NCBI RefSeq assembly: GCF_037042905.1
Contig: NC_087246.1
Location: forward strand, 28,582,001 to 28,646,000
Direction of reading: 5' to 3'
DNA: 64,000 nucleotides
Source: Lytechinus pictus
Lineage: Eukaryota
The notes under the pieces were generated by a model. That model was not told the DNA's origin. It saw only the letters and a program-made list of their open reading frames with translations, and made no database searches. Each line of letters starts with the position of its first letter. Position 1 is the first letter of the stretch. The translations under genes and the position numbers were made by a program. This document shows positions 844 to 57,801 of the stretch, piece by piece.

Positions 844-851
844 TTTGTTAA

Positions 852-7616: not shown

Positions 7617-8547
7617 ATTTTAAGTATGTTTTTGAGAGATCGAGAACAAGATGCGTATCTCTAGAAGCGCTATATACTATAAAAAAATTAGACCGGGGGG
7701 GGGGGGGGGTTTAAGACCTAATGATAGGACATTCTACAGACTTTTGTAATCATTGAATAACTTAAGTATTACATTTTATTCAATCTAGCTTATCTACAAA
7801 ATAATGTGTAATATCTCTAGGGTATCAACTGTTTCTTCATCAAATTTCCTTAAACATACATACTCTTGATGCATTTCACATTGAAAATTGCCGTTTCTTT
7901 TGACATTATTTTTTAACTTATTTTCAATTTATATCAATGTTTCTAATTCACTCAAAGTAATGTGCTCTATACAACCATGACATGTTTTTAATTAATTCAA
8001 TCACATTTGGCATATTGACCTTAATAAACCATTTATTTTCTCTTATTTTTTTATATTTATCTTTTTGACCATTTGCTTCTGTATTTGAAGTAAAAAATAG
8101 TAGAAACTAATGAATTATATTATTTTATCAGTCGCAGTTGGCATTTTATCTATGTTAAATTAACCCATTATATGTGTCTTACCTTTGCACACTAATACTA
8201 TTTCTTTCATTTTTTTGTAAATTGAACATTTTGAGCCTGTGAGCCACCTGTTTCATTTTTTAATAAGCCAATTCAATTCAATATTATTAAATTGAGAAAA
8301 GGAAAATAATGTCACCTTCCCCCTTCTCCTTAATTGTCTTCCCCTTGTAACATTGAATCTCCCCTGTGTATGTCTATTTAGATCAAGAAATCTCTGAAGT
8401 AAGTTGAAATTAATATAAACATGATTATCAGAACTTAAGTAAAATTCTGTAAAGAACGCAAATAATCAAAAACACAATTGAGTGCAATAAGGTTGAATTG
8501 CCTCGAGTGTGTCTTCTGTGCTCATTATATTCGAGGATTCCCCGGTG

Positions 8548-8555
8548 TTAATTAG
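8548..8555 (-). CDS. Gene A terminal coding exon (A-N-stop)
   Basis: Strong polypyrimidine acceptor ttttcccatttctttcatttccttttcag, then (G)CT AAT TAA in phase 1. Confidence 0.6.
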
Positions 8556-11500
8556 CTGAAAAGGAAATGAAAGAAATGGGAAAAATCATGATGATCGGAT
8601 TTTTTGCTTAATGGAAAAATTCTGACTGAAAAAGAAATAACTAAACACCTGTGTCAAGAAATCATGAAAAAGTGCTTTAGAAGTGTATGTATGGTAATAC
8701 AGAGCAAATTTTTTTTTTTCTATATATACGGTTACGGAAATAGAGTACTGGCCATTGGTTTAGATATCATTAGATATCTCCTTGAGCTACAATGTCTAAA
8801 CTACGACAAATACATGTATAAGAAGAGATTTGCTTGACTCATAACGTCTTAACTGGGATATAAGATTAGCTTGACCCATAACATCGTAAATACGATATAA
8901 GGAGAGACCCATAAACGCCATGACTACGATGAAATAGAGATTAGCTTGACATAATTATAACCATGATAACAACTCAACGATTTTAGAAGAGGTATTCCGT
9001 ACTCTTATACTAGTACATGACCCTGAATGTCTCACCTACGATGTAAGAAGAGGGATGTTTGACCCAGAGTATTTACTTATGAGATACATAATAATGACAT
9101 GGAATGTCTTACCTCCGATATAAGAAGAAGTCTGCTTGACCCAGAACGTTGAGAAATATTTCACAAACGTCGCCCTAAAAGGTAACAAGTACATTCTCCA
9201 AATAACTCCTTAAAACAAATGCATGAATATTCACCGGCACGAACGGTGCTTAATTTTTTTTGTCGCTGGAATGACATTCATTACCCCCCCCCATTGGCGG
9301 CGGAAGCCAAAAAAATTAGGGGTGGCCCACCTGAAATTTTTGGATGGACAGAGGGAAAAAAATTGACAAGCCCCCCAAAAAAGGTTATCAACCTAAATTT
9401 TAGGAGGGGATCGCGGAAATTTTTGACAAGCAAAAAAAAAAAAAAAAGTCATCAACCTAAATTTTAGGGGGGACCACAAACATTTCAGGGGGAGCCCACG
9501 TGAATTCAAGGGGGGGGGGGGGGGCGGAGGAAACAAAATTGACAAGCAAAAAAAAAATCAACAAAAAATTTAGGGGGGACTGTCCCCCCCCCACCTCAAA
9601 TTTAGGGGGGGGACAGGTCCCCCCCCCCGTCCCCCCGCTTCCGCCGCCTATGCCCCCCACAAATTCAAGAAAAATGAAAATAATGCAAGGATGAATGGAA
9701 TTTTATTACGGCAATATCCATATCAATTTTAATTGATAAAGGTATCACTCATCAGTTATCACTATCTATTACTGATGTCTGCATATGCATGTGTAGACAG
9801 TTATAATTTGTCTACGACTCAAAATCTGCGGTTTGTTCATTGTTGTTGTTTATTCATCTTCATGATCTAAGCTAAACCCCCTTTACGTCCATCCTAGATA
9901 CCCACTACTTTCTGATTATAAAATTAACTATTAAAAGATTCAAAGATAAACGGAAATGTATTTTAAGAAATGTTAGCAATAACCAAGCAATCATGGCTTA
10001 CAGTGTAAGTCACTAAAAGGTAATGACTCAAAAATGTGTTTTTAGCGTACTCCCGTGTTTGGTGTAAACGTTTATTATGATACGATCAAAGCTAGGTTCA
10101 AACATTGGCATTTCACAGCAAATTTGTTTATCAAATCATCAGTTCTATACTGTTTTTCAAAGCTGAAAATGAAAAAGAGGTGAGTTCAGCTTGAAAAGAA
10201 GTTAGGGAACATAGTTTTTTTCAAATTTTCTTCCCAAATCCTTCCTTTACATTCCCTTGAGGAGGCCTATCCATCTTTATATTCAATTTGTTTAGTCTGA
10301 TACACCCCTGCTATTCTTTTGTTCTCTCTTCCGCCTTCATGAGTTTCCTGATTTGCACTTACACAACGTAAACGTCACCAAGATTTGAATCTTGTGGTGC
10401 GTTCCACGTGAACGTGTTGGTGGCCCCTTTATCATTCCCATTTGCATGTGTAACGGCATCAGGGTTCCCGTCACACGATATGGTTTTGAAATTAGCAGTA
10501 TGCACTGTCCATGTACCAACGACATCATCGCTGTCCTTGCTACGCATCTGCATCAGAATTCCTTTGAATCCCGACGAAACAGTGGATGTGACAGTGACTG
10601 TAACAATTAATAAAGTTTGCACACAAAAAACAAAACAAATCACCTTCCGAATATTTTCGGGACTTTGAGAATTTCGAGTCCATGACTTCCAACAATGTAT
10701 GCTTACTTTTATGATAAGCAACTCGTTATGTTGGCACACTAGTTACCAGAGGTATTGGCATATTATTTAAACTGAAATATTGTCTTTCCCAAAGATCACT
10801 ATTTATGCTGTACGATTCTTTTATTTTCATATATCATATTGCAATATATTGTGGGGGTTAATAGCAATAAAACGAAAATATACTCAATTCTGCGCCTCCA
10901 GAAGAAAGCACTCCGCATTTGTTCCCACTCGCATTTTTTTGCACATACTGATCCTATTTATCGAATATTAAAACAAATTTACGACATTCATACTTGCCAA
11001 AATGAGATTATTATGTACAAATTCTCAACCAAATCTATACCTACACCCTTTAAAGATAATACAATAGCAACATTCATCTATATACACGTCACTCATCAAA
11101 CATTCACATAACAAACCCGAAAACAATATTAGCACACAAAACCGATCAGACATCACTGCCCAAATATTTGGAATGATTTGCCTAATGATATTAAACTCAC
11201 TATCTTTTCTTTCAAAGCTTCATTAAAAAAGTATTTTCATCCAAGTATTCTTAAATATCTCGCCTGCACTTTCACCCACTTGCACACACACGCACACTCC
11301 ATTTCTTTTCTTTCTCCTTTACCATGTTTACTGATGATTTGTACAGTCAGATTTTTCTTCTAGACCTAAGCAATATAATTGGTTTCCATAGCCCTTTTCC
11401 CTTTTGGCTACTATTACTCAAGTATTTATTTTGCTTATATAGTTTGCCACTGCATATTTTTTTCATTACTTCGTCTTATGCATACATTTTTTGTATTTTT

Positions 11501-12793
11501 ATAAAACCATATTTCAGTACTTGGCGTAGTTTATAGTTTTGTTATTACAATATATTAATGTTTTATGCTAACAATAGGACCCCATTGGAAATAAGCCTTT
11601 CGGCTTTCATGGGCTATCCTGTCAAGGTATTCTTCAATTTCATTGTAATCTCCTGTGATATTCTTGACGAATAAAATCAATCAATCAATCGATTAAATGT
11701 ATTTATGAATAAGTTTTGTTATTATTCTGTTGTAAATTTATCACATTGCTATTAACTTTAATATCATTCTACGATTATGTTTACGTATTGTAAATTTATT
11801 TTGACTTTACAACAAATGCAGAAACTCCTGCAAAAAAAATCACTATGTGCCAAACGTTTTCAAGGAACAGAATAGTGATTGGTTTATCAAGTATTCCTTC
11901 GTTATACAGTTTACAACTGATGGCAGATCCTCACACAAATTCTTACGTTTATTTTTTCATATGAATATTTTGAACACAATAGGCACATTTGTAAAACAAA
12001 AATTCACTAGTTACTTTCTATAAATCACCTTTTTATTGATGAATCACACAACTAACTTATACAAATTAATCAATTATTAATTAAAAAAAAATCAAATATT
12101 AGTAAAGCAATAAATTAATTAATAAGAGACCCATAAAGGATAACCGTTCTTAGCGAACAAGACGCAGGGGTAACACAACATAACAGTCCAACAAATACAT
12201 GTAAGAAACATGATTGTAAACAGATAAAAAAAAACATGAATAATAAGCAAGTAAATTCATTGCATAACAATGATATTGAAGAAATCATCAATACTAAATC
12301 ATGTACGTTTGATTACGCTTCTACATTGTAATGGTCATAAGTCTAACCGAGCAGCTTAATGATTGTGAAGTATTTGGCTGTAACAAAGAAGATGGGGGAA
12401 ATCGTGAGTAACATGCAGATAGACAAAGAAAGAGAGAGAGAGAGGGGGGGGGGAAGGAGCGGGGTGGGGGGGGGGAGATAGAAAGATGGGATGGATGTCA
12501 GTGCATGGAGCTATGTTGACGAACGATGTCGTGTGTCGTGCTCCCCCCAAAAAAAAAAAATAATAATACCCCCTCCATAAAAAGCTTGAAAAGTGTAACC
12601 CACCAGATAAGGTCCCTCCAGGTAGGTACTTATCACTTGATGTCGTGATGGAATAAGGACTACCCTCGGTCTGTGGCAACACGGAGTGACCAGGCACCAT
12701 GGTGTCACATTTTAAAACAGGAGCGCCGAAGGGATATCCGCTGGTCTCTATGGCAACCAAGAAGACGAAGGCTACTGTCCTTGCAATCTTCAT
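8548..12793 (-). CDS. Gene A: secreted Reeler-domain-only protein (putative defense-protein-like), ~164 aa, 4 coding exons
   Basis: complement(join(12793..12604,10597..10363,9174..9113,8555..8548)); GT-AG introns of phase 1,2,1. Signal peptide MKIARTVAFVFLVAIETSG, then YPFGAP..CDTMVPGH..SPY / FKGILMQ..VGTW..C..AVTH..FTWNAP / ATFV..FWV, the typical Reeler motifs. Confidence 0.85.
9113..9174 (-). CDS. Gene A exon: Reeler C-terminal part
   Basis: ttttag|G; ATFVKYFSTFWVKQTSSYIG; donor gtaaga; 62 nt, same length as the gene B homolog. Confidence 0.9.
9292..9652. mobile_element. hAT-like MITE with poly-G/poly-C core
   Basis: TIR cattggcggcggaagc / gcttccgccgcctatg; flanks cccccccc / ccccccac (8-bp TSD-like). 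Confidence 0.7.
10363..10597 (-). CDS. Gene A exon: Reeler core
   Basis: ttacag|TC; TVTSTVSSGFKGILMQMR...VGTW...CDGNPDAVTHAN...FTWNAP; donor gtaagt; 235 nt. Confidence 0.92.
10750..11690 (+). mobile_element. 5'-truncated, degenerate CR1/L2-group LINE 3' end
   Basis: Frameshifted ORF2 C-terminal pieces YCNILWG, LRLQKKALRICSHSHFFAHTDPI, IWNDLPNDIK; ends in AATAAA(ATCA)n. Confidence 0.75.
12604..12793 (-). CDS. Gene A exon: signal peptide + Reeler N-terminal part
   Basis: MKIART...YPFGAPVLKCDTMVPGH...YLPGGTLS; donor G|gtgggt; 190 nt, ends in phase 1. Confidence 0.88.
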
Positions 12794-15371: not shown

Positions 15372-15511
15372 TTACAAAAATGCGATTAAAACCATAAATG
15401 CGGTCATCATCAGATGCATACTGCATAGCAACTGCCTGCCATTCCCTGTCGTTGATGATCTGTCTGTTAATAACACGGTCCCACTTATTGATTCTGTCGT
15501 GGATGGGAGAT
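15372..15511 (-). CDS. Gene B terminal exon: S/T linker + GPI-signal-like tail
   Basis: ttttag|AT; DLPSTTESISGTVLLTDRSSTTGNGRQLLCSMHLMMTAFMVLIAFL*. Confidence 0.82.
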
Positions 15512-18500
15512 CTAAAATGAAAGTGAAAATATAAAGCATTTTCCTTCATAACACTCAATGAGAAATAAATGTTTTTATCATGTAGAATTATTGAATGTAA
15601 ACAATATTGATGCTTCACTTACTCAAAAATTGCATGTAGATACAAGAAAACACTGACAGAGAAATTATGCAACCCAGATTTCTTCTCAGTGGAGGTGTTA
15701 AAGGAATATAAATGTTGCTATTTAGTAAACAATGAACAATAAGCGTGAATATATATCGAACGTAACATTGAAGGTGTATCATAACACCTCAAACAAAATT
15801 AATATTATGCACACTACAAGTACAACTATTCGTAATACTCCAACTACAAAGAAAGGTAACTAGGAGGTTCATTATGATAAAACTGTCGATTACGAAATAT
15901 AAAACAAGAAGCCTGAGCACTTCCAATTGTGGTAAAATAAATAATGATCAAATACGTACATAATAATTTAAATTTAGCTCAATGCGATTTAAAATAACGG
16001 AGAATCATTAATTGGCACATTAACATATTTTGTAAAGTCAATTGTAACTCTTTATATTAGCTTGAGGAAACATCCCCTGGCAAACTGGCTTTGTGTTGGT
16101 ATGGGAAAAGGGTTTATAGGGAGGTATCACTTTACCTGGTAGGCATGTAGCTCCTGTATAATTGAAAGGACAGTTACACAAGAAAGTTGCATTATCCGCA
16201 GAGTTCGTACAGTTTCCTCCATTAAGACACGGATTCGAATCACAGGGGTTCACTGGCACGGACAGAAAATGAATTTTAACATTGGGAGGATAAAACAGAG
16301 GAATATGCAAAATCAATCTTGAAAGTGGAGAATATTCCTCAAGCTCTTATCAGGAAGAAAAATCAAATCGACCTCAATTTCTAGAACTATGTCTAACTCG
16401 AGAAAAATATATGATGCTGTCCACTGCCTTTGACAGTTATTTTCATTTTTCAAATATATTTTTAGAGGTAACTCATTCTCTTCCTCTTTTAATGAGACAA
16501 TGGGGATACGAAATAAACTCTTGCAAAAGTCGTTCTCGACTTTCCTTGAACATAATAGAGTTAGGGTGAGAGTTAAGATGTAGTTTCAGGGTTCAGAATG
16601 ATAATTATGATTAGGTGTAGGGTTAAGTTCGAGGCTCGCCTTTTTTTTAGATTGACTTATTATGAATATCTAACAGAGGAATGGTCGTCGCATCAAATTT
16701 CATGACACCAATCACGTAAGCCTAATATTTAATTCAAAACGTTTTGCTAAGATTGTGCTTCATGAGTACTTAGTGTATATTTGACATTTCAAGCTCTCCA
16801 TAACGTATATTGTGATGATACAATTTATTTTTGTGACATCGGAAGACAGTTTTCTATAGTTCAATGATGACCTTTACAGGCAGAAGTAATAGAAAGGAAA
16901 TCCCAAACCACAAAAACACAACTAACCTTTTACTTACATGTCATTTCACATGTTGATCCAGTAGTGAGCTCTGGACAATTACAAGTGAACGTGTCTCCAT
17001 TTTGATTGCAATCCCCACCGGAAAGACAGGGATTAGGGTTACAAGGGTCAGACGCTGGATCACCTTTTGAAAATAAACATAAAATTGGAATAATAAAAGC
17101 AATAATATTTTCATCAGAGTCCAAATAATTTTATTTTACATGATTTGCCATTATTTACTTACATACAGTATAGCACAAGGATAAATGAGTCCAAACTTTC
17201 AATTTACCTTATTCTTATATCATGATAATACCTTGGTAATGAATAATGATGGTGCAATCAAGTTTTTTGTCATATTATCAATCTTCTACGTGAGATGCAG
17301 TCTGTGAACATATCACCACAAATGAAATAGGAAACATGCACTGTCCAAGAGAAAATTACCTATTTCATACCATTTAAACCTCACTTTGATAAAAATGCTA
17401 ATTCTTGTATTAAACACTAACAATTTAACTAACAACTAAGTATTCCAACTCATGCATTCATGCATATGTTGAAGTTAACTTTCAATCAATATAATACTCA
17501 ATAGCAAATACACATTTCAGGCATGAATTTAATGATATATCAATAATTTATTTTAATATATACATATCAAATTGGTGCATGAGCATGGTGTGTGATCATC
17601 TTTATACATGTTTTGTCCAAACATTATATTTCAGCTATATAATCTGAGGAAGGGAACTCACTTCGTGAGATACACGCATTGAAGTAAAATACAACAAAAA
17701 GACCCTATCGAAAAACAAATATTCGATAGTAGCATGTCTTTTGTGTCTTTGATTGAGAATGAGGATTTTCACATTTCTGTGAAATGTTTTTATTTACATG
17801 TTATGCAACAAAATCACTTACGTTCTATACTGCTTGTTGTCTCTGCCACCCAAAACACGCTTCTTGACTGGACAAATGTTGCCCTGAAAAAAAAACTATG
17901 CTGGTCATCTCAAAGTAAAGATGTACAAGTCGGGATGTGAGCCTATCATATCTGTTGTTGGATAACAGTTCTCATGTCCATGGGAGATTTGACAGATATG
18001 TAAAGACCTCTACCAACCAAAGGGAAGCTTTATATATTCATGAAACTATAATTTCATATTGCCACATACTTTTTTTTTCAATCTATAGAATCTAATGACC
18101 AAACCTCACTATTATTTTTACAATATACAAAAAAACTTCCAAAATCTCGGAGACAATCTTAGCTAATTGAAATGGTAAGAGATCGATATGAAGTACATGT
18201 CTAGGGAACCACTGAGTCCATACAACGGCAGTGGCGTAGCTAGGACTTTTTTCCTGGGGGGGGGGGGGGCACTGGGGGTCCTTGCTTTTTCAGGGGGGGG
18301 GGGGCACCATTTTTTCCGTTGTGTGTGTATGTGTCACAAGGGCGGATCCGACTTTCGCAAATCGGGGACGGGTCCCGAAATTATCTTCACCTATATTTCC
18401 CCCGATTAGTCACTTCTTAGTTTTATTCTGATAAAACAACATAAACATGAAATAATCTCATATAAGCCTTATAAAAAGTGTGAGCGCGAAGCGCGAGCGA

Positions 18501-21500
18501 TTTTTGTTTTTTTACTTTCATGTATTTTGTCCTGAAAATTTGATATTCTGGGCAGTGGGCAATGTTATGTGTGATCCTGAACAAGATTCGTATGTAACTA
18601 GATGGTTACTGCGAACGCCAAGCGCGAGCAGAAATTTTTATTAACTGTTCTAGCATTATCGAAAAGGGGCCTGTTAAGGACTGCTTACAGTTACCCACGA
18701 AGACGGTTTATATTTCAATAATGCGAGCGCGAAGCGCGAGCAGATTTTTTTGACATTCCGACCTAAAAAATGGTCATTCTAAGCACTTTTTGTATTAATA
18801 AATGGGATAGGTATGTAACTAAACAATTGATGTGAGCGCGAAGCGCGAGAGGAAGAAAATTGAGATTTTAGATCTAAAAGCGGGACACTCTATTCATATT
18901 TTGTAAATCATAAATAGGATATAGTTAATTGGGTATCATTAATAATGCGATCATGAAGCGTGAGCAGACAATTATTGATATTCTGATGTGAAACTGGATA
19001 ATTTAAGTACATTTAGTATAAAGAACATGCAGGCTATCGAGCATGTTTTAGAATTAGACCTAGAATCTGGGCAGTCTGAATACATTTGTTTAATGGAACA
19101 TTATGGAATACACGTAGACAATAGGAACTTGGCAAATCAAACAATTTGACCACGCAGCGTGCATGAACTTAAAAATGCTGATATGTAGACTATAAAAGGG
19201 ACATTTTACAGCTAGAGCACTTAAATTTGTTAATGAAAAAAAATTGCTGAAAGCTCGATGTCCGAGCTAAAATATATTTTGTATATTGACTTCAAAACTT
19301 GCTCCATATCAGCCTATGGAGCAAGATATGAATCTCATCGAACAGGCAATTTTGGCGCGAAGCGCAAGCAAAAGTTTTATATAGTAACATGAAAGATTTT
19401 TTTTTTGCAAGTCTTCCCTTCACATTATTCCATTCACTCGTCTTCCTCCTCTTATTTTCCTCTTCTTTTTTTCTTCTCTTTCTTCTTCTTTTCCTTTTTT
19501 CTTTTCTTCTTTCTCCCTTTTTTTTGCTCTGCCAATTTTTTTCTTCTTCTTTTCCTTTTTTCTTTTCTTCTTTCTCCCTTTTTTTTGCTCTGCCAATTTT
19601 TTTCAGGGGGGGGGCACCTGGGGGGGGGGGGCACACCAAATCTCAGGGGGGCACCTGGGGGGGGGGGCACACCAAATCTCAGGGGGGGGCACGTGCCCCC
19701 CAGGCCCCCCGTAGCTACGCCACTGAACAACGGTGCCGAAGGTGACATCTGGACAGACTGTCCCTTACCTGGTGACTATAGTGACAAAAAAGAACGGGAA
19801 AATCGAAACAGATTTGATACTTTACGTGAAATAGACAGCTCCATTGGTTTCAGGAGGTGTCCAATTGAATTCAATAGTAGCTGCTTTGTCGTCATTATTA
19901 GCATGAGTTATGGCCGAATTAGCACTCTCACATGCCAGATATTCAAAATTAGTGGCGTCCCCATGCGACCATGTACCAATGATCGGGTCTCCATCGCTGG
20001 AAGTTTCTCGTCGAGCTTGGATCAGAATACCCTTCAAAGCTGCAGAAGCGCTGTCCTTCGAAATTGTGACTAAAGAGAGAGAGAGAAGGGGGACAGGACA
20101 GAACAGACAGACAGAAGAGACCGAACAGCGAGTAAAAAGTAGAGAACGAAATGCAAGTGAAGAACAATACTGACAACATGAAATAAAAAAAGATTGGATA
20201 TTGTAGGCCCAATTATTATTTTTTCATTTTTTCCCTTTACGTTGATTATATTTATTTCTCAACATGACAATACATCTTTCCAGTGACGATCAATTTTATG
20301 ACAATACCATACACTTCATTATCGCATTAAGAACAAGAGGTTTTGAACTGTTAGGTTTACACAGTGACTAACGTATTTTTAAAAATACATACAAACCAGT
20401 AATAAAGGAGGTGTTTGAATGCGCTTGCTCACTCGCTCACATAAAAAAAAAAAACGCCACAAGTTGTTGGTTTAGTTTTATTCATCCAATGATTAATACA
20501 TTGTAAATTTACTTTGTTGGAAAACGAATTGACATTATTTAAATATTTACTCAGATGCGGATGGATTATTCTTTTCAGAGCAATTGATATATTGGTTTTA
20601 TTCTTACCCATTTATTCGAATAGCACACCAATGAATCATGCCTTTAACAAATTGAACATTATCCTCAATGCAATTTTATTTAGGTAAGGGATAATTTAAT
20701 ATTCGAAGTCTTGTTGTTTGTGTTATTTTTGATATGTAGATATTTCCTCATGCAGCTAACATAAACGGAAACAAATATATGCAATGTCATAATACGATTG
20801 TTCGCCTCTTGTCATGTGAACATTAAAATAAAACATAGTGCCCAGTTGTTGACTATGACACTATATTTCCACTTTTTCACCAAAATTTGAATAATCAAAT
20901 GATATATAATTTGCTATGAAATGAGACTTCAAAATTTGGACTAGTTAAGGCAAATAATAATTATCCTATATCTTTCGTGTGGATGTTTAATTGGCTAGTG
21001 GTAAATGATTGTATAGTTTCCTGGGCTCGTATTACAAAGTGTTGCTACAGATTCAAACCAAACTCAAATTGATATTGATGATATCTCATAATTACACGTA
21101 TTTATATAGATCAATCGCAATTTGAATTCATCGTAACTCTATGTGAGACGAGGTCCTGAGGCCCGTAACACAGCTTAGCAATCATCGTAGAATAATACCT
21201 TTACGATTGATTGCATTGACCAGAATGTTCAATCAATCGTGAAAATCAAGCGTATGATCAATTGCTAACCTTTGTGTAACGGGGCACACATTCATGCGTG
21301 ATATTTGTTGGCATAATCAGGATGGTGACACGACCAATGACCTGTGCAAAACCTCACTATGTTTGTCACAACAACTCGTAGAATATCCCTCTCTGCCTAC
21401 ACTTTTGTACTCCTCGAGCCATGCAAAACCATTATCTTTCTTTATTTCGAGAACCAACCTGCTTTGTATCCAGAAATGATTATATATAACCATCGACGTA

Positions 21501-25472: not shown

Positions 25473-37467
<11,995 letters not shown>

Positions 37468-42664: not shown

Positions 42665-42780
42665 TCAGAGAACATAGAGGGGGATCGAAATTGTGGCAAC
42701 CAAGGTGCAGATGTTGTAGGTAATCTTGCTTCCATGTCCTGTTGTTGATGCTGAAGTAGAAGCTTGTGTAGTGACAAGCG
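42665..42780 (-). CDS. Gene D terminal exon: S/T linker + GPI-signal-like tail
   Basis: cttaaacag|CG; [38 protein letters not shown]; TTG-x-G motif shared with genes B and C. Confidence 0.8.
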
Positions 42781-45700: not shown

Positions 45701-48700
45701 AATTATTTCCGAATTAAAAAAACACAATGAACTTGACTGCGTTGACCTGAATCCATAGGACCATATTCTTAAGTCGGGTTTAATCTAAACTCTGGTCTAA
45801 TTTTGTGGTTTAACTATGGATAGCCAATTGTGACATAAATCTCTAACAGTAGAGTGTCATAGTATCAGCTCATTTGATTCTCAAATCATTCTTAATTGTC
45901 TGGAAATGACGAACAAGATAAATGTCTTCACCATTAAAGAATCAGGAAAGAGCACAGTAAAAATAAGAAACATCCCATGTGACCAAATTTTGACACATTT
46001 GACTTCCAGTAATTTTACCACAAAGTTAGACCACGGTCCAAGTTAAAGTTCAGAATATGGGCCATATACTTTTTTTCGAATTATATTTTATTTACCGTCT
46101 GCACATGTACGTCCCGTGTAACCAGTTCCACTACATTCGCACAAGAACTCTGTGTTTTGATCTACATTCTGGCACACCCCTCCGTTTAAGCAAGGCAAGG
46201 AATCGCAGGGGAAAACTTCACATGCAAGGAAATAACATTTAGACGGAGTTAATAGTTTGGAAAAGAATTTTTTGACATGCAAAGAAGAACTGTAGCAGTA
46301 AACATGGCTTATATTATCCTACTACAACCAGACAACTGCAACTCCCCAAACGACAATACTGCTACTGACTCCAACATGTTACTTCTACAACGAGTTCTAC
46401 TGCTATTCTACTACTACTTATATAAAATAATGACTTTTTGCCATAATCTGTTTATTCAATATTAACCTAATCTTATTTGATTCAATGTCGTTTTACAATA
46501 TTTCATGATCACATAAAAATATACACACACACACCCACACATTAGTACATCTACCAGTAAATTCCTTGACATCAACTTTGCCAAAATTCATTGTCACCAC
46601 TGTTATCTCGATAACTCAGTTGTTTTGTTTTATTAGTTACTAATAAGAGCAAAACAACTGCCATTACTACTGTAGCAGTGATGTTTAAGTTGTAAGTATC
46701 ATCATAGTCATCAGCATCAGCTACATTTTACATTTATATTTGTTGAATTATCTTACCCCTTAGTTCACAAAACCGCCCAGCTTGCCAAGGAGGACAGATA
46801 CAATAGAAATTAAGCGAGCCTAATGCACCGCAAGTTCCTCCATTAAAGCAAGGGTTAGGGGTGCAAACATCCGCCTCTGTCATTTCTGTCGATATAAACC
46901 AAAATCGTTTTGGGAAATGCAATTTCTGTCGTGTTTTTTTTCTTTGTCTAGTGCTAAAATAGCGTTAGGTATAATTTGTGCTGCAGAATTTTGATTAACC
47001 CTATTGAGTCCAGGCATGTGATCTGACCCCAGATATGCGTTCACACCGTAACATTGTGTCAGAAATGGATGTCAGCAATGGGCGCTCAGGTTTTGGCCCC
47101 TCCTAGACCCCCTCAAAAAATACCCCCTTGTTCTATGTATATATTTTTTTACCCCAAGTTTCCCATGACCAGAAGTATGTTAATATGATAATCTGGGTAT
47201 AAATTACAAAAATAATTATATAATTATGATTATAATTATAATTATAGGCGGTCGGAAAGGGGGCAGCTGACAACCCCCCCCCCTGTCGAAAATGCATCTG
47301 GTTTGTTAAAATTTACCCCATGAAGCCCATGAACCAAACTTGATATGAATTATAATAGGTATACGTAACAAAAATATGGAAGCATAAATACGTTTCCCTC
47401 GTTCCGTATTGAAGTTCCTTAAATGTTTGTTTCCAAGGTTTACAGTCTGTAACGAAACTCCCTACTGAATTCGTTAATCCCTGCCAGGCTGGAAAGACGA
47501 CCCGGGGGGGGGGGGGTCTATTGTGTATGTAATTTGGATGATTTTGTCGACAATAACTGCTGAAGAGATTTATCAATGATGAAAAAATAATTTGTCGTAT
47601 TCTGAGGTGTTATGACGATAAACAACTACATTCTTGATAGTATATACATACACGGATATTAGCATTGACAAAGTAAAGATACCCATTATCTTCCTTACCT
47701 TGGAAAAATGCTCACAATTATGTAAGGCATATAAGAAATTAACTATTTTCTTGTGTGAGAGGGTGTGTGTGTGTATGTGTGTGTGAAAAAAGATCATGCT
47801 CGTGACAAACACACTCTTAAAACCTTTCAGAATTTTGGTTAATATTGATCATTTTCATCTGTCGGACACATGTTTCCCAACAGATTCTTATACTTTGACC
47901 AATCCTTTTTGAGAGTTTTATGTTTATCCGTTACTTGATTTCCATTGTAATGTGAAGTACAAGAAATTCTTCTCTGACTAGTGTGCATATAAAGGAAACA
48001 AATACCTCCAGGGAAAGCCTTTGCTATCACATCATCATCATCGTCATCAACTTCATCATCACCAGCCCATTACCTTGATTGTCACATGTAGTACCGGCGT
48101 AGCCAGGCGCACAGGAACAGACAAATTCTGATTCTTGATTCACATCTTCACACGTCCCACCATTTTGACATGGATTGGAGTCACAAGGAAACACTGAGAT
48201 GAATATTAAAAGAAATAGAATGGCAATTTTGAAGTAAGTTCTCATTTCATTAAAATAATGGAAGCATGATATTTATTCGTGTAGAATAAAAGAAACCACG
48301 AATATATCAACTCAATCTTCACAAAAAGATAAAATAGTTTGAAAACAATTAATATTTTTCAACTGAATTCCGATGTAGACTATTTTTGGCCAGTTTCTCA
48401 ACATTTCAACTCTGTATTCATGACAACCTGAACTATCAAATCCAAAGGAGTCTATCCTTAACAGTGAAAGTCTAACACCAAATCCATTGTATTTTATTTG
48501 TTAAATTACCATGTAAACGTCAAATTTGCCACATAACTGTAGCAAATGACAAATCTGTATTATAGTTGAATACGAGTATTATCATCATAATCACGGTCAT
48601 ATCATACGATTCAAAGGAATATGTAAGGTTGGTCTAGAAGTACTTTTCTAATCATACTTTAAGAGTATAATGATTTAGATAACGCCGTTCATTACTTTGT

Positions 48701-51700
48701 AACAAAAGACTGCCAACGAATCATAATCAAAATCAAATATCGTTATCATATCGCAAACGATTTTCCACTAAGGTGTGCACTTGTTTGAAAAAATTATATA
48801 TATACAGTACATGTATATATATATATAATAATCATATATACATGTATATATAACAGGTTGGTGGCATAAATCACAAAGATCAAAATAATTAATCGTCCTC
48901 AGCGTGATCATCACCCTTATTAATCTTCTTTACCACAATCAGTATTCTCACCAAGGTAATGACAGGTTGGTCCAGCGTATGGAGGTATGCAGTTACACAT
49001 GAAGCTCCTACCTGATAGTTCGCATGTACCACCAGATAGGCACGGGTTCGGATCGCAGGCATTTGAAACTGATAAATAATATATGCATNNNNNNNNNNNN
49101 NNNNNNNNNNNNNNNNNNNNNNNNNNNNNNNNNNNNNNNNNNNNNNNNNNNNNNNNNNNNNNNNNNNNNNNNNNNNNNNNNNNNNNNNNNNNNNNNNNNN
49201 NNNNNNNNNNNNNNNNNNNNNNNNNNNNNNNNNNNNNNNNNNNNNNNNNNNNNNNNNNNNNNNNNNNNNNNNNNNNNNNNNNNNNNNNNNNNNNNNNNNN
49301 NNNNAGTAGTCGTATAGTAGTCGTAGTAGTATAATTATTATCAATGGAAAAGATTGCAAAGTTTTGCTTGCTTATTTCCGAAAAAAAAAACACAATGAAC
49401 TTGACTGCGTTGACCTGAATCCATAGGACCGTATTCTTAAGTCGGGTTTAATCTAAACTCTGGTCTAATTTTGTGGTTTAACTATGGATAGCCAATTGTG
49501 ACATAAATCTCTAACAGTAGAGTGTCATAGTATCAGCTCATTTGATTCTTAAATCATTCTTAATTGTCTGGAAATGACAAACAAGATAAATGTCTTCACC
49601 ATTAAAGAATCAGGAAAGAGCACAGTAAAAATAAGAAACATCCCATATGACCAAATTTTGACACATTTGACTTCCAGTAATTTTACCACAAAGTTAGACC
49701 ACGGTCCAAGTTAAACCCGAGTTCAGAATACGGGCCATATACTTCTTTTCGAATTATATTTTATTTACCGTCTGCACATGTACGTCCCGTGTAACCAGTT
49801 CCACTACATTCGCACAAGAACTCTGTGTTTTGATCTACATTCTGGCACACCCCTCCGTTTAAGCAAGGCAATGAATCGCAGGGGAAAACTTCACATGCAA
49901 GGAAATAACATTTAGACGGAGTTAATAGTTTGGAAAAGAATTTTTTGACATGCAAAGAAGAACTGTAGCAGTAAACATGGCTTATATTATCCTACTACAA
50001 CCAGACAACTGGAATTCTCCAAACGACAATACTGCTACTGACCCCAACATGTTACTTCTACAACGAGTTCTACTGCTATTCTACTACTACTTATATAAAA
50101 TAATGACTTTTTGCCATAATCTGTTTATTCAATATTAACCTAATCTTATTTGATTCAATGTCGTTTTACAATATTTCATGATTACATAAAATACACACAC
50201 CCACACATTAGTACATCTACCAGTAAATTCCTTGACATCAACTTCTTTGCCAAAATTCATTGTCACCACTGTTATCTCGATAACTCAGTTGTTTTGTTTT
50301 ATTAGTTACTAATAAGAGCAAAACAACTGCCTTTACTACTGTAGCAGTGATGTTTTAGTCGTAAACATCATCATAGTCATCAGCATCAGCTACATTTTTG
50401 ATTTATATTTGTTGAATTATCTTACCCCTTAGTTCACAAAACCGCCCAGCTTGCCAAGGAGGACAGATACAATAGAAATTAAGCGAGCCTAACGCACCAC
50501 AAGTTCCTCCATTAAAGCAAGGGTTAGGGGTGCAAACATCCGCCTCTGTCATTTCTGTCGATATAAACCAAAATCGTTTTGGGAAATGCAATTTCTGTCG
50601 TGTTTTCTTTTTCTTTGTCTAGTGCTAAAATAGCGTTAGGTATATTTTGTGACTGGAGGCTGCAGCATTTTGATTAACCTTATTGGGTCAGTGGAATTTG
50701 ACCCCAGACATGTGTTTATACTATGACATTGTGTCAGAAATGGATGTCAGCAATGGCCCTTCAGCTTTTGGCCCCTACTAGACCCCCTCCAAAATACCCC
50801 CTTGTTCTATATTTTATTCTTTACCCCACGTAGCCCATGACCAGAAGTATGTTAATATGATAATCTGGGTATAAATTACAAAAATAATTATATAATTATG
50901 ATTATAATTATAATTATATGCGGTCGGAAAGGGGGCAGCTGACAACCCCCCCCCCTGTCGAAAATGCATCTGGTTTGTTATAATTTACCCCATGAAGCCC
51001 ATGAACCAAACTTGATATGATAATAGGTATACGTAACAAAAATATAGAAGCATATATACGTTTCCCTCTTTTCGTATCAAAGTTCCCTAAATGTTTGCTT
51101 CCAAGGTTTACAATCTGTAACGAAACTCCCTACTTCCCTACTGAATTCGTAAACCCCTGCCAGGCTGGAAAGACGACCCGGGGGGGGGGGGGTCTATCGT
51201 TCAATGTTCACCAAAAGATTCGTTACCTTGACCTATCCTTTTTAAAAGTGTTTACTTTATCCGTTACTCGATTTCCATTGTAATGCGAAGAGCAAGAAAT
51301 TCTTCTCTGACTAGCGTGCATATAAAGGAAACAAATACCTCCAGGAACAGATTTTGCAAACACATCATCATCATCGTCATCATCGTCATCATCATCATTA
51401 TCATCATCATCATCATCATCATCGTCATCAACTTTATCATCACCAGCCCATTACCTTGATTATCACAGGTAGTACCGGCGTAGCCGGGCGCACAGGAACA
51501 GACAAATTCTGATTCTTGATTCACATCTTCACACGTCCCACCATTTTGACATGGATTGGAATCACAAGGAAACACTGAGATGAATATTAAAAGAAATAGA
51601 ATGGCAATTTTGAAGTAAGTTCTCATTTCATTAAAATAATGGAAGCATGATATTTATTCGTGTAGAATAAAAGAAACCACGAATATATCAACTCAATCTT

Positions 51701-52209
51701 CACAAAAAATATACTAGTTTGCAAGCAATGAAGCTCTTTCAACTGAATTCCGATGTAGACTATTTTTGGCCAGTTTCTCTGCATTTAAACTCTGTTTTGA
51801 TGACAACCTGAACTATCAAATCCAAAGGAGTCTATCCTTAACAGTGAAAGTCTAACACCAAATCCATTGTATTTTATTTGTTAAATTACCATGTAAAAGT
51901 CAAATTTGCCACATAACTGTAGCAAATGACAAATCTGTATTATAGTTGAATACGAGTATTATCATCACGGTCATCCCATACGATTCAAAGAAATATGTAA
52001 GGTTGGTCTAGAAGTACTTTTCTAATCATACTTTAAGAGTATAATGATTTAGATAACACCGTTCATTACTTTGTAACAAAAGACTGCCTACGAATCATAA
52101 TCAAAATCAAATATCATTATCATATCGCAAACTATTTTCCACTAAGGTGTGCACTTGTTTGAAAAAAAAAAAATTTATACATGTGTATACATATATATAA
52201 TAATTATAT

Positions 52210-52263
<54 letters not shown>

Positions 52264-52515
52264 CAGGTTGGTGGCATAAATCACCAAGATCAAATTAATT
52301 AATCGTCCTCAGCGTGATCATCACCTTTATCAATCTTCTTTACCACAATCATTATTCTCACCAAGGTAATGACAGGTTGGTCCAGCGTATGGAGGTATGC
52401 AGTTACACATGAAGCTCCCACCTGATAGTTCGCATGTACCACCAGCAAGGCACGGGTTCGGATTGCAGGCATTAGAAACTGATAGATAATATATGCATAT
52501 TATTATTATTATTAT

Positions 52516-52550
<35 letters not shown>

Positions 52551-55500
52551 TAGTTGTAGTAGTAATAGTATTAGTAGCAGTAGTCTAGTAGTCGTAGTAG
52601 TAGTAGGGGTCACTGTAGTAGTCCTAGCAGCAGAAGAAGTAGTAAAAGAAGTAGAAGTAGTACNNNNNNNNNNNNNNNNNNNNNNNNNNNNNNNNNNNNN
52701 NNNNNNNNNNNNNNNNNNNNNNNNNNNNNNNNNNNNNNNNNNNNNNNNNNNNNNNNNNNNNNNNNNNNNNNNNNNNNNNNNNNNNNNNNNNNNNNNNNNN
52801 NNNNNNNNNNNNNNNNNNNNNNNGTAATAGTATAATTATTATCAATGGAAAAGATTGCAAAGTGTATGACAATTGACAATATCAAGGATAAAGATAATGC
52901 AACCACTTCAACGCCCGGGATTGACAAAGTTAACTTAAAAACTATTAAAAACTAAGTATAATATTGAGATCATATAAACGATAAGCATGGAACCCACATA
53001 TCAATGTTCAACTCAAACAATGAATGCATGCAATTTAAACAATTCTTGATCAGTTCATAAATATAGTAAGGCAGGCCGATGATCAATGATTACCCTAAAA
53101 TTGTTTTATTTTTATAGATTTGGGAAGTAGGTCCAAATCCTTGTACTTTTGAAAAATTAGGATGACATTTCAAAATTGTANNNNNNNNNNNNNNNNNNNN
53201 NNNNNNNNNNNNNNNNNNNNNNNNNNNNNNNNNNNNNNNNNNNNNNNNNNNNNNNNNNNNNNNNNNNNNNNNNNNNNNNNNNNNNNNNNNNNNNNNNNNN
53301 NNNNNNNNNNNNNNNNNNNNNNNNNNNNNNNNNNNNNNGAGTTTATATTTAAGATAATAACTCCCCCCCCCAAAAAAAAAACACGGCCTTTTCGAAATAT
53401 AAGGTTGTTTTTTATGTTTACTCAAATCATCTTGATTTGGGGGTAAGACTTCCCCCTCCCTCATTCAAACGGTCAACCATACACATAACATGTATGCTTA
53501 TGGTTGTTCCAGACTCTTAGGGCACTCACTCATCGGCGTGCAATGCATTCTGGACAGAGTAAAGATTACATGACTTTATTGATTAGAATAATTCATAAGA
53601 AATAGACAAAATGTTTGTATATCAAAGAATAAATGATAGAAATAATGCTAATGTTCATACTCTTTCATAGTTAAGGCCATTGAAAGACTAGACTGCATTT
53701 AAAAAAAATCTTATTTCAATTATTACTATCCACAATGCAGTTCTGGTTTTTCTCGCATACCGAAATTATGGTTAGTCTTATTTCAGGACAATAACTTTCG
53801 TCAAATTTTCCAGCCCCTGGTCCCCCTACCTTTGGGGTGAGATTTCCGCCCTTGGAGAAACCCCCATTAAAGATGGGATTGTGTTCTTTTTTTAATCCCA
53901 TATTACAAAGAATCTTACTCCCTATCACAGCTACATGTATGTGGCAAGAATGTTACCAAAATCCACCCCCCTAGGTTTGAGGTTGTTCGATCAAGATTAA
54001 TTAATTACCCCTTCATGAAATATATCTGGGAAAATGCTAAAAGATCCCTATTTCAATTATTTCTAGGATTCTTTTTCTCGGAACTGTGCCCTCTGAATAG
54101 TGGCAGTGACCTTTATAAACCTTCAGCATTATCGGGTACGGATGATTTGAAATTATTACCATGGCTAAGCGCGATCTTATCAATGATTTCACATTTTTTA
54201 AATAGCAAAATTACTTACTTTGAACATGTTGAATCGTGGGTCCTTGAACCATAACCCAAAATGTATTGTACTGTTGTACAAGTGTACCGCTGTATTAGGG
54301 ATGGAAAACACACAATGTTATCAATGTTTTGACATTGCGAAAAAAATCACAATTTAATGACGATGCAATTTGACATTTATTTAGCATTTGACAAAGATAA
54401 TGGAACTCAAAGACTGAGCAACTTCAAGGTACATGGAGCAGATGGAACAGCCCTGCGTGACCCGACACGCAGAGCCGTTGGACTGACGTCTGCCGGCGCC
54501 GACAGTTAGTCGGGAACAGACGTTAGTCCGACAGCCCTGTGCTTGCGTAACTGACAATTTATTTTTTTCCCCAACATCTCAGACTCCGCAACTTTATTTA
54601 CACCGACACACAGGTTTACATATTTAAAACCTCGTCGACCCCGTCCCCTACTCTCTCTGACTTGCTCCNNNNNNNNNNNNNNNNNNNNNNNNNNNNNNNN
54701 NNNNNNNNNNNNNNNNNNNNNNNNNNNNNNNNNNNNNNNNNNNNNNNNNNNNNNNNNNNNNNNNNNNNNNNNNNNNNNNNNNNNNNNNNNNNNNNNNNNN
54801 NNNNNNNNNNNNNNNNNNNNNNCCTATTTCTCTTTCTTTTTCTCTTCCTCTTCTTTCTATTTTCTCTCTTCTTTCTCCTTTTTAAAAACCCCTTTTCTCC
54901 ATTTTTCCCGACGGCAGCGCAGATTTACCGACGATATCCAGGGGTAGTGTGGGGGGGGGGGGGTGTCGCACCCCATCCCCTATAGCGACGCTCCTGCTTC
55001 GACTGCGATCAATTGAAATGAAATGTGTTCACATTTCTATAAACATTAAGTACGGAATTTATACAACGACAGGAAAGTTTTATAAATTACAATATATAAA
55101 AATATTACAGGTAAACTATATATTTTTTACAATTATAATGTAAAACTGGACGTGTGATCGACCGATCTTCATTCCATTTAATCAAATGAAACATTCATTT
55201 ATTTTTTTATATAAATTATACAAATCAATAATACCTCACAAAACAATGAATGCATATACAGTATGTAAATTATGTACAGTATGATATGGAAGAAGGCGCA
55301 AAAGCCCAGAAAGCAGGTGTTTGTGTAGGGATACGCCTGTAAAACTATTGACTAAACAACAAAAGAAAGGGCTGGTATAAGAGAAGAGAGGAGAAGAAAA
55401 ATAGAGAGGCGAGCATATGCACGATATCGGGTCTTGAAAACGGGAAATTTGATAACAACTCTTATCTGAAGTCAGTAGCTAAAGTATAAATCCGATCCGT

Positions 55501-56587
55501 ATTTCTTCATTTATTTCGAACTTGACATTATTTTGCTTTGCAGTAAGATCATATACTCTCTCTTTCTCTCATTCACAGTAACATGGATTTTCTCTCTTTC
55601 TGTTTTTTTTTAAGTACTAGTACAAGCTAAATTATACATTTCTAACTCACACGACCTTGACATCAGACAGTTTGGTTGCAGGTGCATTCCACTTAAATGT
55701 GTTGGTCAGACCTTTGGGGACAGAGTTTTTGTGTGTAAGCGCGTTATTTGATGCCCCATCGCATGACACAGCCTGGAAGTTAGTGGTATCCTCCACGTTC
55801 CAAGTCCCCACAATAGCATCGTCATCTACGTTCCTCATTTGCAAGAAGATTCCTTTAAAAGGATCCGACATAGCATCTGTGGAAATGGAAACTGCAAGAA
55901 GAAAAACCAGGCAACGAGGATCTCTCATAAAAATCGAGTTTACAACAAATTGCAACGACGAAGCAGTTTCGGTCCTAATCGATTATATGTAGCTTTGATA
56001 AAATAGACCTAGATTTGATCTGAAATATGGAAAGTGAATTGTGATTTGCTGACCCCGGGGTAATGAAAAGAACTAGAAATATCTCAAATGAAGTCATTTT
56101 AGTGGAACCCGCTAATTTTCTGTCTCAGCGAAAAACAGTATTCACTTCGCCCTGTTGTAATTTTAGTAAACATATTAAGTCGTTACATTTTATTTTTAAG
56201 ATGTCAAAATTTAATTTAATCATAATTGTGTAACGATGTCAGATTTCATGTTTTCGATTTTGAATGAAAATGTTGTTATTGCTATGGACTTGTTAATAAA
56301 TGTACAAACTACTATAAAAATGTTATTCAGATACAAGTTAATGTAATACCTGTGACTTGTTGACTGGCTGAGAAGGTGTTGACATCTGCCGTTATAGTAT
56401 AGGGAATAGGTTCACTCGAAGAGCCGATATAATGACCGATAGGGATCATTGAGGAGCATATACCAGGGTTGTCGGAGACAGGAGCTCCTGTAGACTTGGC
56501 CTCACAGACCCGCAGGGAAGAAGCTGTCAGTATCGCAATCACGACCAGCCTAAACCCACTCTTCACTAAATTAGCACTCTCCTTCAT
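42665..56587 (-). CDS. Gene D: signal peptide-Reeler-10xEGF-S/T-GPI-signal protein, ~624 aa, 14 exons
   Basis: complement(join(56587..56350,55891..55651,54289..54219,52478..52362,51574..51455,50554..50426,49888..49769,49068..48952,48193..48074,46885..46757,46215..46096,44514..44398,43757..43638,42780..42665)) = 1875 nt, open frame; four N gaps in introns could hide sequence. Confidence 0.8.
43638..43757 (-). CDS. Gene D EGF exon 10
   Basis: [40 protein letters not shown]; 120 nt. Confidence 0.87.
44398..44514 (-). CDS. Gene D EGF exon 9
   Basis: [39 protein letters not shown]; 117 nt. Confidence 0.86.
45493..45623. mobile_element. Harbinger-like MITE
   Basis: ggggccccataacacaaag ... ctttgtgttacgggcccc; related copy at ~21160-21286. 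Confidence 0.65.
46096..46215 (-). CDS. Gene D EGF exon 8 (duplicate of exon 4)
   Basis: Protein identical to EGF exon 4; 120 nt. Confidence 0.8.
46757..46885 (-). CDS. Gene D EGF exon 7 (duplicate of exon 3)
   Basis: Protein identical to EGF exon 3; 129 nt. Confidence 0.8.
48074..48193 (-). CDS. Gene D EGF exon 6 (duplicate of exon 2)
   Basis: Protein identical to EGF exon 2; 120 nt. Confidence 0.8.
48952..49068 (-). CDS. Gene D EGF exon 5 (duplicate of exon 1)
   Basis: [39 protein letters not shown]; 117 nt. Confidence 0.8.
49769..49888 (-). CDS. Gene D EGF exon 4
   Basis: [40 protein letters not shown]; 120 nt. Confidence 0.84.
50426..50554 (-). CDS. Gene D EGF exon 3
   Basis: [43 protein letters not shown]; 129 nt (an in-frame alternative acceptor would start the exon at 50545). 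Confidence 0.84.
51455..51574 (-). CDS. Gene D EGF exon 2
   Basis: [40 protein letters not shown]; 120 nt. Confidence 0.86.
52362..52478 (-). CDS. Gene D EGF exon 1
   Basis: [38 protein letters not shown]; 117 nt. Confidence 0.86.
52500..52663. repeat. (TAT)n/(TAG)n microsatellite running into an assembly gap
   Basis: Visible trinucleotide array. Confidence 0.85.
54219..54289 (-). CDS. Gene D exon: Reeler C-terminal part
   Basis: atacag|C; [23 protein letters not shown]; donor gtaagt. Confidence 0.87.
55651..55891 (-). CDS. Gene D exon: Reeler core
   Basis: ttgcag|TT; FKGIFLQMR...VGTW...[11 protein letters not shown]...FKWNAP; donor gtgagt; 241 nt. Confidence 0.92.
56350..56587 (-). CDS. 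Gene D exon: signal peptide + Reeler N-terminal part
   Basis: [36 protein letters not shown]...CSSMIPIGH...IPY...QQVT; donor gtatta. Confidence 0.87.
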
Positions 56588-57304: not shown

Positions 57305-57524
57305 CACGGGCGGATCCAGGATTTTCCAACAAAAGGGATGGGGCACATTTCACATCTTCCCGAGAAAAAAAAATTGACAAGCAAAAATAAAGGTCTTCTC
57401 TTTCAAAGGGGGGGTGGGGCACACTTTTGTTTTAACGGCATTTTTACATTACAAGATTGTGCCTCTCAACGGGGAGGGGGGGGGGGGCACGGGCCGGTTG
57501 TGCCCCCACCCGGATCCGCCAGTG
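57305..57524. mobile_element. hAT-like GGCGGATCC MITE
   Basis: cacgggcggatcc ... ggatccgccagtg with a perfect 8-bp TSD, ATTGGAAT. Confidence 0.8.
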
Positions 57525-57745
57525 ATTGGAATAATGAAGTGTTGCTGATAGTATAGACCTTCATAAATCATTTTATTAATCGGTCACTAAGTGAAAGATG
57601 CCAGAAATGTTTTTTTTTTAATTGTTAATCAAGAATAGACAAAATCAATTTTAATTACTTGGGTAAATAATCTTAAAGGTTATCGTTGATTAAGTAATGT
57701 AAAAAGCTTAACCACCTAATCGACAACTTTGAGAATGAAACTAAC

Positions 57746-57801
57746 CTTTATTATGCGATTCCTTCCTGGTAATCTCCGAAGTGAAGACAATAAACTTTAT
57801 A
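57746..57801 (-). promoter_or_regulatory. Gene D putative TATA box and short non-coding first exon
   Basis: TATAAAG at 57801-57795 (minus), donor AAG|GTTAGT at 57746/57745, candidate acceptor ctttaaag at 56619 upstream of the ATG. Confidence 0.4.

Follow-up and report, generated by a model that had tools for sequence, protein, structure and literature searches.

A sea-urchin cluster of Reeler-head genes with EGF stalks of variable length and a predicted soluble member

Work on Reeler 'defense proteins' has dealt only with the small, soluble ones of insects and ticks. Is their head also a general module for surface recognition or adhesion in deuterostomes? The question is raised by a stretch of 64,000 nucleotides of Lytechinus pictus chromosome DNA (GCA_037042905.1, record CM073227.1; below, the window), in which four co-oriented paralogs, D, C, B and A, carry a Reeler head. 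In B, C and D this head sits on a stalk of epidermal growth factor (EGF) modules with a lipid-anchor-type tail, and the compact cluster also contains a predicted soluble member, A, that is apparently derived from an anchored one. All features of the cluster lie on the minus strand, and one RefSeq protein of the record matches exon for exon. We read the four genes, with a probability of about 0.6, as old paralogs that encode anchored and soluble versions of one Noduler/Hdd11-type Reeler head and that would serve surface recognition or adhesion.

We counted EGF-like units by a six-frame scan for their six-cysteine pattern, which returned 20 units, all on the minus strand and in groups of 2, 8 and 10. 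An all-versus-all comparison of the open stretches on this strand then added two sets, each of four related pieces, that lie upstream of the EGF groups, with a fourth copy that has no EGF group. Splice sites were read directly, allowing us to assemble four open-frame gene models of 164 (A), 300 (B), 550 (C) and 618 (D) amino acids (aa). The head of each gene is encoded by three exons, the first of which runs from the start codon through a hydrophobic leader to the end of the head's first third; exons 1, 2 and 3 end in phase 1, 2 and 1, respectively, and the splice positions are identical in all four genes. Pairwise identity among the four heads is 39–45%. Every one of the 20 EGF exons, ten in D, eight in C, two in B and none in A, is 117–123 nt long, a multiple of three, and in phase 1-1; all introns of heads and stalks are GT-AG. 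A preliminary description had proposed four co-oriented paralogs with one exon plan, in which signal peptide and Reeler domain extend over three exons, and the identical positions and phases of the head splice sites, together with Reeler matches in exons 1 and 2 of every gene, bear this out. The Ser/Thr-rich, hydrophobic last exon that it ascribed to the whole family is found in B, C and D; A has instead a last exon with 8 coding nucleotides and a TAA stop. Its EGF counts of 10, 8, 2 and 0 are correct for genomic exons, and the RefSeq isoforms of D carry only seven or eight. The monotonic fall of these counts along the direction of transcription is visible in this cluster. We give it no weight because four values fall into such an order with a chance of 1 in 12 and because it fails in relatives; the graded order as a conserved design is therefore rejected, and represents a snapshot of a fast-changing array. 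A fifth member of the cluster was rejected as well: the flanks, positions 1–8400 and 57800–64000, contain no Reeler or EGF match.

Pfam Reeler (PF02014) aligns with exon 1 at profile positions 1–35 and with exon 2 at positions 38–118 of 131 in all four genes. The exon-2 peptides of A–D reach 48.7–53.8 bits at a cut-off of 21, as the preliminary description's assignment of a Reeler head would predict; the exon-1 peptides of A, B and C reach 23–26 bits, and that of D stays below the cut-off with 12.6 bits. An AlphaFold model of the D head (mean predicted local distance difference test score 92) shows a leader helix at residues 5–23 and a nine-strand sandwich. Its best matches in the PDB are structures of the human F-spondin reeler domain, 2ZOT and 3COO, with template modelling (TM) scores of 0.73–0.75 by target and an E value of 3e-9. 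A profile of the family heads likewise finds Spondin-1 structures (E 6e-10); a single-sequence search of the PDB with the A ortholog gave a chance match only. Among Swiss-Prot models, lepidopteran putative defense proteins match the D head best (36–43% identity, TM 0.80–0.89 by hit), followed by the Reeler heads of ferric-chelate reductase 1 (FRRS1; 24–28% identity), human REELD1 and, with 14–16% identity, spondin. From this order of matches, the urchin heads belong to the defense-protein/FRRS1 subtype. In an alignment of 60 family heads (D numbering), C123 is invariant and its partner in the conserved cysteine pair, C44, is nearly so, as are P49, H52, T132 and H133. In the Reeler motifs M-x-P-x-H and V-T-H, M, two positions before P49, and V are majority consensus only; all of these residues, the cysteines included, are visible in the four models of the window.

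Pfam EGF recognizes C EGF1 and the second copy of D module b (E ~1e-10), and the other 18 modules were called by the six-cysteine pattern and their mutual similarity. The modules are of the non-calcium-binding type: EGF_CA gives an E value of 0.26 on C EGF1 and is not listed for D module b copy 2, and the D/N-x-D/N-E/Q-x-C start is lacking. A Notch-type O-fucose consensus is present in six of the eight modules of C, eight of the ten of D and neither of the two of B; the O-glucose consensus occurs in one (B), five (C) and five (D) modules. EGF arrays of such a type make an extended glycosylated spacer, and we infer the same for the arrays of B, C and D. The tails of these three genes, read by inspection, are Ser/Thr-rich and contain T-T-G-x-G, a polar spacer of 7–8 residues and 13–14 hydrophobic residues at or near the end. 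The G-x-G motif and the hydrophobic end are conserved among the three paralogs and in their orthologs in L. variegatus and S. purpuratus. This arrangement fits a glycosylphosphatidylinositol (GPI) attachment signal and agrees with the GPI-type tail suggested earlier for three members.

Gene A has a predicted signal peptide and a Reeler domain and neither EGF module nor tail, so that a predicted soluble member stands beside the anchored-type ones. Its model is identical to the L. pictus RefSeq protein 'putative defense protein 3' (P0280, 164 aa). The donor after exon 3 is intact, and the next acceptor is followed by two codons and TAA. In L. variegatus, the ortholog of A terminates at identical residues, and the stop is common to both species. 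Two A-like genes of S. purpuratus share the four-exon plan, with a hydrophobic tail as last exon; the acceptor and first two codons of this exon align with those of A, where the third codon is TAA. The sequence behind the stop of A is probably a relic of the tail exon still used in S. purpuratus, an assignment that we keep at probable because the alignment is weak beyond the first ~15 bases. Since the S. purpuratus A-like genes keep the hydrophobic tail, A may derive from an anchored ancestor. In L. variegatus, the predicted RefSeq isoform X2 of 'putative defense protein 3' (P0281, 177 aa) joins the ortholog of B exon 1 to the orthologs of A exons 2–4 (window positions 22285–22506 and 10362–10571), skipping the remainder of B and A's own exon 1. 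The join is in frame because both share phase 1; it could be splicing between neighbouring genes or a prediction artefact.

The L. pictus RefSeq model of C, with 262 aa, enters introns at both ends and joins exons 2 and 3 and the first three EGF exons as in our model. Over its whole length, the full model of C shares 65% identity with an eight-EGF protein of S. purpuratus whose tail is of the same type. The first 73 residues of an L. variegatus prediction match exon 1 of B at 92% identity.

Relatives of the cluster's genes occur in other echinoderms. A profile of exon 2 of the four genes, compared with a library of 1.8 billion proteins, matched 543 proteins, 46 of them at E ≤1e-10, and the best matches are echinoderm proteins of the same plan and very different lengths. 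S. purpuratus contains (i) a Reeler domain with hydrophobic tail and no EGF (186 and 200 aa, two tandem copies), (ii) a Reeler domain with three EGFs and tail (333 aa) and (iii) a protein of 1424 aa that has, besides the Reeler domain, many EGFs, HYR-like repeats and a true transmembrane segment. Full-length D as query adds Reeler-plus-EGF proteins of brittle star, feather star and starfish, and such proteins are present, as database predictions, in all five echinoderm classes sampled. Word-indexed homolog searches that were limited to the head region or used the A ortholog gave few close relatives each. In a tree of the heads, A groups with L. variegatus A, C with a 554-aa protein of S. purpuratus, and D with D of L. 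variegatus and S. purpuratus, all with full support. B falls into a clade with the 333/410/1424-aa group of S. purpuratus and a long-branched feather-star sequence, with a support below the star threshold (80/99). From these pairings and the identity of 39–45% between heads it follows that the lineages of A, C and D, and probably that of B, predate the split of Lytechinus and Strongylocentrotus. The order D then C is common to L. pictus, L. variegatus and S. purpuratus, and the B lineage ranges from two EGFs in L. pictus to the 1424-aa transmembrane protein in S. purpuratus. One S. purpuratus locus (L001, positions 216–22496) contains two tandem A-like genes with Reeler and hydrophobic tail, followed in the same orientation by a gene with a product of at least 1240 aa, for which no Pfam entry is listed; the order of short and long members may therefore differ from that in L. 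pictus.

The automatic names of these proteins are fibropellin-like, delta-like, notch homolog, neurocan-like and putative defense protein. The first four are misleading and conceal the family because they were taken from EGF similarity alone. A, D and a portion of C are present in RefSeq as predictions with borrowed names; the genes with Reeler head and EGF stalk are real and already predicted in public databases. The preliminary description had known of no characterised Reeler-(EGF)n-GPI family. The literature searched holds none, and we found in it no paper that characterises echinoderm proteins with Reeler and EGF domains; the architecture as such is not unseen, being predicted already in L. 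variegatus, S. purpuratus, brittle star, feather star and starfish. The family, its spread in echinoderms and the dynamics of its stalk are new relative to the searched literature, and the sequences themselves are not.

What could such a cluster do? B, C and D would be GPI-anchored surface proteins that hold the head away from the membrane, and A would be a soluble form that came into being within the Lytechinus lineage, where a stop codon separated the tail exon from the rest. The head may bind a polymeric ligand, either microbial wall polymers, as in its insect relatives, or matrix glycans. If so, the system could serve surface recognition or adhesion, A being a soluble binder or a competitor. 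A number of observations weigh against the reading. The exon joins on which it is built come from splice sites, open frames and RefSeq predictions at the gene level. The RefSeq isoforms of D in L. pictus have 8, 7 and 7 EGFs instead of ten and never include EGF module c, and a search of the listed RNA runs for module c and its flanks showed none that holds it, a weak negative. For B, no matching RefSeq or database model was found. The tail of C ends in five polar residues, which is less typical and could indicate a short membrane span, and true transmembrane tails do occur in relatives from S. purpuratus and starfish. Finally, Reeler proteins have other known roles, being found in mollusc and coral skeletal matrices.

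This last point leads to a different account, in which the four proteins are structural components of an extracellular or biomineral matrix, in embryonic or adult layers or in the skeleton, and take no part in recognition, stalk length having no functional meaning. Their EGF arrays look like those of matrix proteins, fibropellins included, hence the RefSeq names, and Reeler-domain proteins are known from the shell matrix of gastropods (SMP1; PMC12277549) and the skeletome of red coral (PMC7853314). However, arthropod defense proteins and the FRRS1 head are much nearer to the urchin heads than spondin is, a tail of the lipid-anchor type is more in keeping with a cell-surface protein than with one deposited in a matrix, and the avidin-like and CUB families that define fibropellins are absent from the precomputed Pfam lists. 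We consider a purely structural role unlikely.

Is the stalk of D genuinely ten modules long in the genome? A blastn self-comparison (periods >500) detects a 3.67 kb repeat unit with the four EGF exons a, b, c and d that is present twice in D. Aligned blocks of the two copies are 94% identical; exons are 97.5% identical, most intron segments 91–97%, and one indel measures ~290 bp. Such values allow for an assembly artefact, in which two haplotypes of one four-exon block were placed in tandem next to the gaps and the true gene has six EGF exons: sea urchin alleles diverge to about the extent seen between the two 94% identical blocks, the similarity includes the introns, and each block is flanked by a gap at an equivalent position. 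Between the duplicated exons there are 9 synonymous and 3 non-synonymous changes, which shows that they are under coding constraint; the synonymous excess fits alleles as well as paralogs and does not separate the two. We nevertheless regard the artefact as improbable and the tandem duplication as very probably real, because (i) the junction of unit end and unit start lies within contiguous sequence (49305–49470), with three bases shared at the breakpoint, (ii) all three RefSeq isoforms of D traverse both copies and (iii) the gap-free orthologs, from two independent assemblies, carry their own, different duplications. The L. variegatus ortholog has the exons a-b, a-b-c-d, e and f, eight in total, with a unit of ~2.3 kb and ~85% identity. 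In S. purpuratus, three a-b units of 1.1 kb with 90–94% identity are followed by a diverged a-b pair, d, e and f, giving 11 exons. We conclude that the EGF array of D duplicates recurrently. With 10, 8 and 11 EGF exons in three urchins, D is a clear example of how symmetric exons let stalk length change quickly. The S. purpuratus D locus (L004, positions 12574–16818) holds these 11 exons, and the 538-aa RefSeq protein contains eight EGFs, older isoforms 7, 6 or fewer; since the proteins use fewer EGFs than the locus holds, cassette skipping is predicted there too.

All four N runs of the window are located in introns of D. The gap at 49089–49304 stops 20 nt upstream of the acceptor of EGF5, those at 52664–52823 and 53181–53338 lie between head exon 3 and EGF1, and that at 54669–54822 between head exons 2 and 3. 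None interrupts an exon. The L. pictus assembly by itself leaves room for an unread exon within a gap, but in L. variegatus, whose ortholog is free of gaps, no additional exon occurs at the equivalent positions. Runs of (ACT)n, (AAT)n and related trinucleotides at 52500–52663 and 49305–49330 adjoin two of the gaps, at matching places in the duplicate units, and probably explain these unassembled spots.

Save for skipped cassette exons, the RefSeq isoforms of D join Reeler, EGF and tail exons as in our model. The acceptor of module c has no pyrimidine tract. The module is included in the L. variegatus D isoforms X1 and X3, and a single residue differs between L. pictus and L. variegatus. As c is skipped in the L. 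pictus predictions and used in L. variegatus, ten is the genomic maximum of D and eight is what current predictions reach. Between 6 and 9% of the sampled words of the D region are contained in the RNA runs X1–X4, about the share of the D exons, so that D is probably expressed. Among older L. pictus predictions (P0153, P0154, P0004), two D-like proteins differ in 5–8% of residues from head exons 1 and 2 of D in the window and from each other, and one B-like protein has an EGF module that does not occur in the window. Such divergence suggests either that allelic variation is high or that the genome contains additional paralogs at other places.

Since each EGF module is one symmetric phase 1-1 exon, a stalk can lengthen or shorten in frame. 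Growth by unequal crossing-over took place recently in D, with a four-exon unit; earlier in C, where EGF2–5 form a tandem array of exon-plus-intron units of ~590 bp that are 86–89% identical; and independently in D of the two other urchins. Predicted isoforms of three species differ by whole EGF exons, and these gene predictions, as distinct from reads, point to exon skipping. Stalk lengths do differ greatly between the genes, as had been described, when genomic exons are compared; the earlier idea of a design that displays heads at graded heights is replaced by that of a likely by-product of recurrent tandem exon duplication and of cassette skipping in predicted isoforms. A more far-reaching proposal would place the cluster within a fast-evolving system of echinoderm innate recognition, in which the height of a Noduler-type head is tuned by unequal crossing-over and cassette-exon skipping, splicing between genes adds head variants, and combinatorial surface and soluble binders result; we hold it to be a long shot.

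That the head acts on a metal or a redox substrate at the cell surface, with the EGF stalk as a mere spacer, deserves hardly any credence: FRRS1 heads are among the best fold matches, H52, H133 and the consensus methionine could be read in this sense, and weak fold matches to the D head include the bacterial copper proteins YcnI and CutI (PDB ranks 20, 29 and 32; Swiss-Prot rank 30), but the copper-protein matches have low TM scores by query (0.43–0.45), the urchin models and Pfam lists contain no DOMON or cytochrome b561 partner domain, and what the Reeler head does in FRRS1-type proteins is itself unknown (PMC10691727).

Further elements were noted in introns of the cluster (coordinates of all gene features are listed in Table 1). 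The 3.1 kb intron of C between EGF5 and EGF6 contains, on the plus strand, a 291-aa open frame (29647–30519) with a match to RVT_1 (E 1.7e-14), probably a retroelement fragment that lengthened the intron. In introns of A, B and D, similar minus-strand stretches (~9284–9702, 18095–18409, 19295–19775 and 54860–55028) translate to proline runs and lysine/arginine-rich runs and look like copies of one dispersed repeat.

Table 1 Features of the Reeler-EGF cluster in window coordinates (CDS, coding sequence)
Feature	Position	Strand	Remarks
Gene D, CDS span	42665..56587	-	10-EGF model 618 aa; RefSeq 'fibropellin-1-like' X1-X3, 538 and 498 aa
D exon 1	56350..56587	-	predicted signal peptide and Reeler start; ends phase 1
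D exon 2	55651..55891	-	Reeler core, Reeler E 1e-12; ends phase 2
D exon 3	54219..54289	-	Reeler end; ends phase 1
D EGF1	52362..52478	-	module a copy 2
D EGF2	51455..51574	-	module b copy 2; Pfam EGF match
D EGF3	50426..50545	-	module c copy 2; weak acceptor
D EGF4	49769..49888	-	module d copy 2
D EGF5	48952..49068	-	module a copy 1; acceptor 20 nt from assembly gap
D EGF6	48074..48193	-	module b copy 1
D EGF7	46757..46876	-	module c copy 1
D EGF8	46096..46215	-	module d copy 1
D EGF9	44398..44514	-	module e
D EGF10	43638..43757	-	module f
D last exon	42665..42780	-	Ser/Thr-rich, T-T-G-H-G site, 14-residue hydrophobic end; GPI-signal-like
D tandem unit copy 1	45685..49365	.	four EGF exons and introns
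D tandem unit copy 2	49366..52866	.	94% identical to copy 1; junction read contiguously at ~49365/49366
Gene C, CDS span	25473..37467	-	550-aa model, 8 EGFs; RefSeq partial 262-aa 'fibropellin-3-like'
C exon 1	37248..37467	-	predicted signal peptide and Reeler start
C exon 2	36225..36474	-	Reeler core
C exon 3	34896..34963	-	Reeler end
C EGF1	33662..33781	-	Pfam EGF match
C EGF2-5	31242..33153	-	exons 33034-33153, 32434-32553, 31827-31946, 31242-31361
C EGF6	27978..28094	-	
C EGF7	27013..27132	-	
C EGF8	26468..26590	-	
C last exon	25473..25627	-	Ser/Thr-rich, T-T-G-A-G site, hydrophobic stretch, then K-S-K-Q-L
Gene B, CDS span	15372..22506	-	300-aa model, 2 EGFs
B exon 1	22284..22506	-	predicted signal peptide and Reeler start
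B exon 2	19826..20069	-	Reeler core
B exon 3	17822..17883	-	Reeler end
B EGF1	16938..17054	-	alternative in-frame acceptor 9 nt upstream
B EGF2	16136..16252	-	
B last exon	15372..15511	-	Ser/Thr-rich, T-T-G-N-G site, hydrophobic end
Gene A, CDS span	8548..12793	-	164 aa, Reeler only, predicted secreted
A exon 1	12604..12793	-	
A exon 2	10363..10597	-	
A exon 3	9113..9174	-	
A last coding exon	8548..8555	-	8 nt, TAA stop
Continuation past A stop	8428..8547	-	in frame; G-N-S site and hydrophobic stretch; probable tail-exon relic

The predicted Reeler-EGF proteins of other echinoderms (S. purpuratus XP_003730204, XP_030848230 and XP_030848243; L. variegatus XP_041457365; Amphiura, Anneissia and Asterias) have the architecture of the cluster's proteins and are computer predictions that represent orthologs and paralogs; they differ widely in EGF number, and some possess HYR-like repeats and a true transmembrane tail. 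In their arrays of Notch-type EGF modules, B, C and D resemble the fibropellins, which are sea urchin proteins of the apical lamina. Fibropellins combine these with a CUB-like N-terminal and an avidin-like C-terminal domain, whereas the urchin Reeler-EGF genes have the Reeler head and the hydrophobic tail in their place. Membership in the fibropellins was rejected, as Reeler and EGF are the only families in the precomputed Pfam lists of the D proteins. The reeler domains of F-spondin (Spondin-1) and reelin share the fold of the urchin heads, but the urchin genes contain neither spondin/TSR domains nor reelin repeats. FRRS1/SDR2 and Drosophila CG8399 begin with an extracellular Reeler head of the same subtype; FRRS1 continues into DOMON and cytochrome b561 and the urchin head into EGF modules and a short tail, which sets the urchin proteins apart from the FRRS1/SDR2 (CYBDOM) class.

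The arthropod Reeler defense proteins (Noduler/Antheraea putative defense proteins 1–3, Hdd11, Bombyx Reeler1 and tick PIXR) consist of a signal peptide and a single Reeler domain of the same subtype. Those of insects are induced by infection and bind lipopolysaccharide, lipoteichoic acid or beta-1,3-glucan (PMC10321396), and PIXR, a secreted gut protein of ticks, limits bacterial biofilm (PMC5543126). In starfish, coelomic fluid proteomics mentions a 'putative defense protein astreelin' without further study (PMC13409769). Gene A has exactly the architecture and size of this class (~160–170 aa), and B, C and D differ from it by placing the same kind of head on EGF stalks with a lipid-anchor-type tail.

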